From Macrostomum lignano (lineage: Eukaryota), in contig NIVC01001390.1 in NCBI GenBank assembly GCA_002269645.1, positions 62,001 through 126,000 on the forward strand: 64,000 bases of DNA, in the 5' to 3' direction. The notes beneath the pieces are model-generated. The model was not told where the DNA came from and searched no databases. It worked only from the letters and a program-made list of their open reading frames with translations. How positions within the stretch are numbered: position 1 is the stretch's first letter; every line of letters begins with the position of its first letter. Both the position numbers and the translations under genes were made by a program. Positions 18,784-19,454 of the stretch are shown here, one piece after another.

Positions 18784-19454
18784 ATGCGATTTCTTGCCAT
18801 GCAGCGCTTCTTACCGCCAAGCTGCTGCCACTAGCAACAGGTAGCGCCGTCCGCTACCACGATGACCCTGCAGAGCGTGAAGACCATCAACTAGCTGAAG
18901 CCATCGACGATATTAACAGTGAAGAGGAAGCCACTGAAAGTCAAGATTCTTCAGCTGAGGAAAGCCTTCCTAACGACCACGAAGATGGAGAAGATGACGT
19001 AAGTTTTTTTGCGACCGACTCGTTGTTTTGAATTTCGCTAGTTCATGTCTACATAAAATAACGATACCAAAAAACAAACAAACAGGAAATCGATCAAGCG
19101 GAGAAACAGTCCCGATTCAGAAGGATTCGGCGTGCAGCAAAACAAATCAAGCGGGTTTTTAAACGATATGGGTGGAATCGACGTCGGCCGATCTGGGGTC
19201 GAGGTCGCGGCCGTTGGGGACGACCCTGGCGACGCCACTGGGGAGGATGGCGCCGGAACGGAAGATCAAGGAAGACTATGGTTCCACCGACACCTAAAAC
19301 TACTCGAGCATCTTTGACAACAGCCCGTCCGCCAACAACGCAGCGCGTTACTACTGAGTCGCCGCCGCCAGCTACGACGCCGAATAGGCCGCCACCGCCG
19401 CCCGGCCCGATACCACAGATTGAGGGTGGCAACGATTTTGGCGAGTTGGAATAA
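18784..19454 (+). CDS. Secreted precursor: signal peptide, acidic propiece, Arg/Trp-rich cationic peptide, Thr/Pro tail (AMP-like); one 1-nt frameshift in exon 1
   Basis: Exon 1 18784-18998 (215 nt, one base short near 18800) ends GAT GAC|gtaagt. Exon 2 19086-19454 is open in phase 0: EIDQAEKQSRFRRIRRAAKQIKRVFKRYGWNRRRPIWGRGRGRWGRPWRRHWGGWRRNGRSRK...GELE*. Confidence 0.75.

Follow-up and report, generated by a model that had tools for sequence, protein, structure and literature searches.

What lies between positions 18784 and 19454 of this stretch of DNA, and is it still a working gene? The window analysed here is the whole of a 64,000-nt piece of contig NIVC01001390.1 from the Macrostomum lignano assembly GCA_002269645.1 (Mlig_3_7), and coordinates refer to it unless another contig is named. 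The original prediction had seen in this interval a hidden precursor of an Arg/Trp-rich peptide of antimicrobial type, split over two exons and damaged near its start. As judged from sequence, the best supported description is a gene of two exons that is restricted to one lineage, being known so far only from Macrostomum, and that encodes a secreted prepropeptide; the locus is likely to be a real gene or a very recent ex-gene. The fuller reading, to which we give a probability of roughly 40%, is that 18784–19454 is one of three homeologous copies, that the gene's intact copy would encode a host-defence-type prepropeptide and that the window copy has been inactivated. The locus is a candidate rather than a discovery.

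Gene model and block structure of the window copy

Re-reading the DNA reproduced the predicted boundaries exactly: an ATG at 18784, GTAAGT at 18999, the end of the intron at 19085 and a TAA at 19452–19454 (Table 1). Both the intron signals and an intact 189-aa reading frame in another genomic copy support the two-exon model. Introns of the neighbouring metalloprotease genes are built alike (80–100 nt, GTAAGT...NCAG). The exons stand out as GC-rich islands (0.52 and 0.58, against 0.33 in the intron and 0.36 and 0.28 in the flanks), which we count in favour of a real gene. Why, then, had the gene been missing from the list of open reading frames, as the prediction remarked? The frame that encodes the acidic block does not open until 18771, and it contains no ATG, GTG or TTG ahead of 19278, so that the list shows just a 58-aa fragment. 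An antisense frame of 159 aa (19094–19573) was set aside: it matches no Pfam family, the minus strand offers no splice signals, and the coding strand is plus.

Table 1. Features of the candidate locus and of the neighbouring genes, in window coordinates
Feature	Position	Strand	Basis or detail
Secreted reprolysin-type M12B metalloprotease gene	12507–14522	-	profile match; divergent partner of the plus-strand gene
Secreted reprolysin-type M12B metalloprotease gene BOX15_Mlig018498g1	16335–18227	+	profile match, annotated
Putative spliced-leader trans-splice acceptor, ATACTTTCTCTTCTTTACAG	18743–18763	+	pyrimidine tract and TTACAG, no upstream donor; cut after the last base
Start codon and 16-codon remnant of the original frame (MRFLAMQRFLPPSCCH), TAG at 18832–18834	18784–18834	+	translation
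Frame-break interval, one base shorter than in the intact copy	18787–18831	+	overlap of open frames; alignment with the intact copy
Remaining exon 1 in shifted frame: degraded signal-peptide core (..ALLTAKLLPLATGSA), then acidic propiece	18804–18998	+	
Intron, 87 nt	18999–19085	+	GTAAGT...AAACAG, GC 0.33, in-frame stops
Exon 2: end of propiece, basic block, Pro/Thr-rich tail, acidic C-terminus, TAA	19086–19454	+	TAA at 19452–19454
Polycationic block, 55 aa	19110–19274	+	20 Arg, 4 Lys, 6 Trp, no Asp or Glu
Predicted amphipathic cationic helix, FRRIRRAAKQIKRVFKRY	19116–19169	+	hydrophobic moment, model
Mucin-like Pro/Thr-rich tail, 59 aa, acidic end	19275–19451	+	
AATAAA, likely polyadenylation signal	19577–19582	+	123 nt past the end of the stop codon
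74-aa orphan gene BOX15_Mlig004062g1 (ORF 21862–22086)	21112–22086	-	annotated

Signals expected at the ends of a transcript are found on either side of the exons. Spliced-leader (SL) acceptors of M. lignano are enriched for the motif [T/C]TNCAG (PMC8629364). The TTACAG ending at 18763 fits it and lies 21 nt upstream of the ATG; sites of this kind with at least 12 pyrimidines among the 14 preceding bases number only six on the plus strand of the 64 kb. This acceptor is conserved in the other two copies, and a homeologue of the neighbouring protease gene has its annotated 5′ end directly after a similar one, about 35 nt 5′ of its ATG. Judging from these signals, the candidate gene is probably trans-spliced at 18763/18764. 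Downstream, the AATAAA is conserved in all three copies.

Joined across the intron, the exons specify an acidic block of 58 aa with a net charge of −21, which includes the first eight codons of exon 2, then the basic block with +24, and lastly the tail. The predicted translation of the basic block is exact, composition included, and the Thr/Pro tail with its acidic end is present as described (16 Pro and 12 Thr). The edges of the block carry basic motifs, RFRR/RIRR on the N-terminal and RSRK on the C-terminal side. Is such a block more than a quirk of base composition? A six-frame scan of the 64 kb for 55-aa windows with K+R of at least 20 and D+E of at most 1 returned four places: two in tandem-repeat DNA, one in exon 2 but read in another frame, and the block itself. 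No tandem repeat underlies the block, so that a repeat artefact was dismissed. Moreover, its 20 arginines are spread over all six codons, which places the bias at the protein level.

The amphipathic helix that had been proposed within the block holds up as well. When the same residues were shuffled 5000 times, its hydrophobic moment (0.99) was attained only once. A single-sequence AlphaFold2 model, poor overall (mean pLDDT 60), predicts helices in three places, the hydrophobic N-terminus, the acidic block and the basic stretch, with the remainder as coil, and the basic helix is its best part (pLDDT 72–81). By moment and model, the product would contain the cationic amphipathic segment of a host-defence precursor, and the anionic propiece roughly neutralises the cationic part in the window as in the intact copy. 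Typical helical antimicrobial peptides are less extreme in charge density and mean hydrophobicity than this block, with its +24 in 55 aa and a mean hydrophobicity of about −0.7.

Three genomic copies and a shared frame break

The genome of M. lignano DV1 comprises three paralogous subgenomes that differ by ~2.2% genome-wide and by ~1.1% in coding sequence (PMC10733133). Using the neighbouring protease clusters as a guide, we located the other two copies of the candidate on NIVC01001630.1 and NIVC01000695.1, and the order M12B protease, candidate gene, 74-aa gene is kept at all three. The copy on NIVC01001630.1 is identical to that of the window in both exons, frame break included, with a single substitution in the intron. 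Between 17208 and 19571 the two differ at two positions in 2364 nt, compared with a difference every 20–90 nt in the flanks. The near-identity ends at 19571, and divergence returns at the candidate's AATAAA. Gene conversion, a very recent common origin or a duplication in the assembly could each account for this 2.4-kb block.

The copy on NIVC01000695.1 is ~4% diverged from the window and has one more base within 18787–18831. As a result of this base it reads through from the same ATG, and its positions 5242–5897 hold an intact ORF of 189 aa that spans an intron of 86 nt (a 1-nt indel relative to the window). Its product consists of a 22-aa predicted signal peptide, an acidic stretch of 57 aa (net −19), a basic one of 51 aa (net +22) and a 59-aa tail rich in Pro and Thr. 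The N-terminus, MRFVAIAALLAAALLPLATGSA with cleavage predicted before V, agrees with the von Heijne rules, having a positive n-region, a hydrophobic core of 16 residues and small residues at −3 and −1. The basic block counts 17 Arg, 5 Lys and 5 Trp, opens with a predicted helix of strong amphipathicity and is shortened by an in-frame deletion of 12 nt with respect to the window. The design that had been read into the damaged window copy (predicted signal, anionic propiece, cationic peptide) is borne out by a copy in which it can be read without interruption.

What happened to the window copy? The prediction had placed a 1-nt deletion near 18800 and left open whether this was a sequencing error or a recent inactivation. 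The missing base is real with respect to the intact copy, and inactivation is the favoured half of that alternative. Pilon polishing of the assembly drew on Illumina as well as RNA-seq data (PMC5730564), and because two separately assembled copies share the break, a sequencing error is unlikely. The hydrophobic signal core reads T and K in the window where the intact copy has A and A, changes that fit decay after inactivation. Given the base lost just after the start and these polar or charged residues, the window copy most likely represents a recently inactivated homeologue. Provided that the locus is a real gene or very recent ex-gene, we are confident that this copy is non-functional. All three copies retain the 86–87-nt intron and synteny, which excludes a processed pseudogene or retrocopy and makes the window copy a unitary or homeologous pseudogene.

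Could the window copy be unbroken after all, either through a 1-nt assembly error or through a start codon donated by the SL? The SL of M. lignano ends in ATG (PMC8629364), translation in flatworms can start from the AUG of an SL (Cheng et al. 2006, as cited in PMC9851317), and a TAG at 18768–18770 that might act as a second acceptor is immediately followed by the open acidic frame, in which case the product would begin as M+KIQKYAISCHAALL.... However, the ORF of the intact copy begins with a genomic ATG, and the window copy differs from it by a missing base. It is the CAG at 18761–18763 that fits the acceptor motif, and an SL AUG joined there would lie in the third frame and meet a stop after 27 codons. 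The same sequence recurs in the second, separately assembled copy of the Pilon-polished assembly, and the K and T in the signal core likewise speak against an unbroken copy, which we consider very improbable. The SL-donated start was dropped once the intact copy had shown its genomic ATG to be in frame. Two further ways around the break were rejected: cis-splicing could not repair the frame of the window copy, where the stretch from the ATG to the TAG lacks a GT, and SL-like sequence assembled into the DNA near 18790 is not indicated, the local alignment score being unremarkable and equalled in 10% of tiles.

No further copies came to light. Upstream of the protease at one more distant protease locus (L007, 1300–10000) there is no similar ORF, and the sequence of another (L009) ends before the expected position. 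Within the 64-kb window, a search with a roughly joined query returned no paralogue, only low-complexity matches in tandem repeats.

Genomic neighbourhood

The candidate gene sits in a cluster of genes for secreted products, made up of the two M12B proteases and the 74-aa orphan. The protease ORFs match M. lignano proteins best, and the locus retrieved for one of these proteins agrees base for base with window 6335–28227, which places the window on NIVC01001390.1. In the deposited annotation of NIVC01001390.1, no gene is called from the end of the protease at 18227 to the 74-aa gene. The orphan encodes a signal peptide followed by a highly acidic peptide, is 99% conserved between copies and is found only in M. 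lignano. It has the 'signal plus acidic' design in common with the candidate gene, to which its similarity is without significance. Paralogy of the two was rejected: a BLASTP E value of 0.04 is equalled by 27% of block-shuffled sequences, and there is no similarity at the DNA level. The divergent M12B protease pair occurs in three to four copies per genome. A full-text literature search for Mlig018498 and a search for the locus names in the supplementary tables of two M. lignano papers gave no matches. Logan contigs from SRR28338163–66 contain 1.9-kb transcripts for a 532-aa M12B protease that is 67% identical to the plus-strand gene of the window and belongs to another species or a more distant paralogue; among the proteins of that source, no ORF resembling the candidate was detectable.

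Several other elements share the window. A run of four ORFs at 35–2737 on the minus strand, adjoining an N-gap at ~2990–3560, may be a parvovirus-like endogenous element: with ORFs scanned singly, a phospholipase-A2-like domain (PF08398, E = 2e-9, motif YxGPG...HDxxY) turned up in one of them and a P-loop, GPAMSGKT, in another. At 8307–10800 (GC 0.56–0.60) lies a decayed retroelement with frameshifted reverse-transcriptase fragments (RVT_1, RVT_thumb). Downstream of the candidate, a 758-aa ORF at 24510–26786 on the plus strand, absent from the deposited gene set, consists of Leu/Lys-rich tandem repeats of ~115 aa with weak matches to helical-repeat domains. It is followed by an Inscuteable homologue that extends on the same strand over ~20 kb, from 27743 to 47783, with its C-terminal exon at 47316–47783 (PF19427, E = 9e-38). 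This gene is full of tandem repeats (33.2–34.3, 36.9–39.6 and 41.2–43.6 kb), some of which yield spurious Arg/Trp-rich ORFs. Lastly, an ORF with a GIY-YIG endonuclease domain at 49663–49998 on the minus strand (E = 3.6e-6) is possibly the remnant of a Penelope-like element.

Relatives, evolutionary rate and competing readings

Searches for relatives of the product were uniformly negative. A search of 5.8 billion clustered proteins yielded no homologue at E ≤ 0.01, an exhaustive scan of 1.84 billion representatives yielded none at E ≤ 0.001, and the 189-aa product and the 58-aa ORF fragment are both absent from a collection of 15 billion proteins. These collections seem to lack the M. lignano RNA-seq assemblies for the genes in question. 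Pfam offers no family for the whole product or its separate blocks (a compositional match to DUF4633, E = 0.006, stays below threshold) and detects no cathelin domain, and the PDB holds no relative, the helix matching a designed coiled coil only. Protein and Pfam searches revealed no sequence or profile homology to a described family of antimicrobial peptides, toxins or neuropeptides, and our literature search returned no antimicrobial peptide described from Macrostomum. The deposited annotation calls no gene at the candidate site in any of the three copies, the intact one included. As it leaves out transcripts that overlap repeats or were judged 'non-coding', the missing call, like the absence from the protein collections, is weak evidence.

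How has the sequence evolved between the window and the intact copy? With 18 nonsynonymous and 5 synonymous differences (pN 0.044, pS 0.037, pN/pS 1.18), amino-acid changes accrue at the neutral rate. For the adjacent plus-strand protease gene, this same pair of copies indicates strong purifying selection (pS 0.042, pN 0.0021, pN/pS 0.05). A pseudogene in the window lineage would account for part of the candidate's nonsynonymous excess. The count nevertheless exceeds what a half neutral, half constrained pair of lineages would give, which would make the intact lineage weakly constrained or diversifying. Synonymous codon usage is without adaptation (GC3 0.45 versus 0.58–0.70 in neighbouring genes, z = 0.9). 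Other features speak for a coding gene. Apart from the break, the coding indels measure 3 and 12 nt, whereas those in the intron and 3′ flank measure 1, 1, 1, 1, 2 and 8 nt. The 24 substitutions in 566 aligned coding nt spare 19086–19223 altogether, a run of 138 nt (P about 0.025 in simulation) that encodes the last part of the propiece, then the helix and the earliest RW/RG motifs. The charges of the two blocks shift jointly, from −21/+24 in the window to −19/+22 in the intact copy. At the C-terminal edge of the basic block a dibasic site is retained despite three nearby substitutions, as RSRK before T in the window and RPKK before T in the intact copy. The basic motifs at both edges are conserved between the copies; many basic pairs also occur inside the block.

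These data can be read in more than one way. The locus might be a young gene or proto-gene, perhaps transcribed and spliced, whose ORF drifts neutrally in all copies with no selected protein function and whose resemblance to an antimicrobial precursor is a by-product of successive compositional blocks, GA-rich, then CG-rich, then CC/AC-rich. Nonsynonymous divergence at the local neutral rate, unadapted codons, the want of homologues and of annotation, and the fact that two of the three copies are already broken are all what such a locus would display. Yet the intact copy has a canonical predicted signal peptide, the coding indels other than the break stay in frame, the helix core is free of substitutions, base composition cannot produce amphipathic periodicity, and the copies agree in their charge balance and in keeping the dibasic boundary. 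We hold a proto-gene to be rather unlikely. Slightly less credit still goes to a secreted product of glands that evolves fast and works without being cleaved, be it from seminal-fluid or prostate glands, mucus or rhabdite glands, or adhesive glands, with acidic and basic blocks and a mucin-like tail that would drive self-association, coacervation or binding to partner tissue. In Macrostomum, reproduction-related transcripts with signal peptides diverge rapidly, and their homologues are often missing from congeners (PMC7336406); the candidate's omega is about 1. The polypeptide is block-charged and mostly disordered, carries a Pro/Thr tail and has secreted neighbours. The conserved basic motifs flanking the cationic block, however, suggest processing, and the known adhesive proteins of M. 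lignano are very large repeat proteins.

Processing at basic sites is also what a neuropeptide or prohormone precursor would require, with signal peptide, acidic spacer and short peptides freed at di- or tribasic sites. The basic block abounds in RR, KR and RRR, and its W-G-R motifs could yield Trp-amides. But no peptide unit is repeated, none of the dibasic pairs has a Gly directly before it, cleavage is predicted to give fragments that are either 1–5 residues long or Arg-rich, the product resembles no known family, and an omega of about 1 would be unusual for neuropeptides; we consider this origin highly improbable, even more so than an unbroken window copy. By analogy, the layout of the candidate matches the standard design of a linear host-defence peptide precursor. 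One specific version has the intact homeologue expressed and freeing a 51-residue, Arg/Trp/Gly-rich host-defence peptide that has no relative in sequence, its propiece charge co-evolving with the peptide while copies are being lost after the recent genome triplication. Taken in all these particulars, that version is unlikely.

Proposed mechanism and comparison with known precursors

If the intact copy does make a host-defence peptide, the steps can be laid out from its design. The protein would enter the secretory pathway, where the anionic propiece would neutralise the cationic block. A convertase would then cleave at the furin- or convertase-type basic motifs and free a polycationic amphipathic peptide, and this could bind anionic membranes or polymers as an effector of host-defence type. 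Drawn from the design, this mechanism is the one that we would put first for the intact copy, although overall it stays rather unlikely.

What would follow? Were the intact copy expressed, a genetically tractable model would gain an effector candidate for flatworm innate immunity or secretory-gland biology, and if the host-defence reading were true, macrostomid flatworms would have their first described antimicrobial peptide. The locus also illustrates how short, low-complexity, lineage-restricted genes escape annotation, in this case in every copy. Its three copies display early fates of homeologues after a recent genome multiplication: one intact, two sharing a frameshift within a nearly identical 2.4-kb block.

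Among known systems, flatworm prohormone and neuropeptide precursors share with the candidate a signal peptide, an acidic spacer and clustered basic cleavage motifs; the candidate departs from them in having no repeated bioactive units, no Gly-dibasic amidation sites and a neutral, fast evolution. The helminth defence molecules of trematodes, such as Fasciola HDM-1, are small and far less basic, and have been described as immunomodulators of the mammalian host. They are secreted flatworm proteins with an amphipathic cationic helix as their active part, and such a helix is predicted for part of the candidate as well. There is, however, no detectable homology, they have no acidic propiece of this kind, and M. 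lignano is free-living. Arg and Trp in a segment devoid of acidic residues recall the class of indolicidin, tritrpticin and lactoferricin, peptides of 13–25 residues with a high Trp fraction that derive from cathelin-domain or lactoferrin precursors. The block of the candidate is longer (51–55 aa), much poorer in Trp (10–11%) with 33–36% Arg, and comes without a cathelin domain. Hydra arminins and similar invertebrate precursors of linear antimicrobial peptides consist of a signal peptide, an anionic propiece and a highly cationic peptide. The candidate has no sequence similarity to arminins, its activity is only predicted, its cationic block is internal and followed by the 59-aa Pro/Thr tail, and it contains far more Arg together with Trp/Gly motifs. 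What it has in common with arminin-like precursors is the (here predicted) secretory signal, a charge-neutralising propiece similar in size to the cationic part, a cysteine-free and very basic product, and restriction to one lineage.
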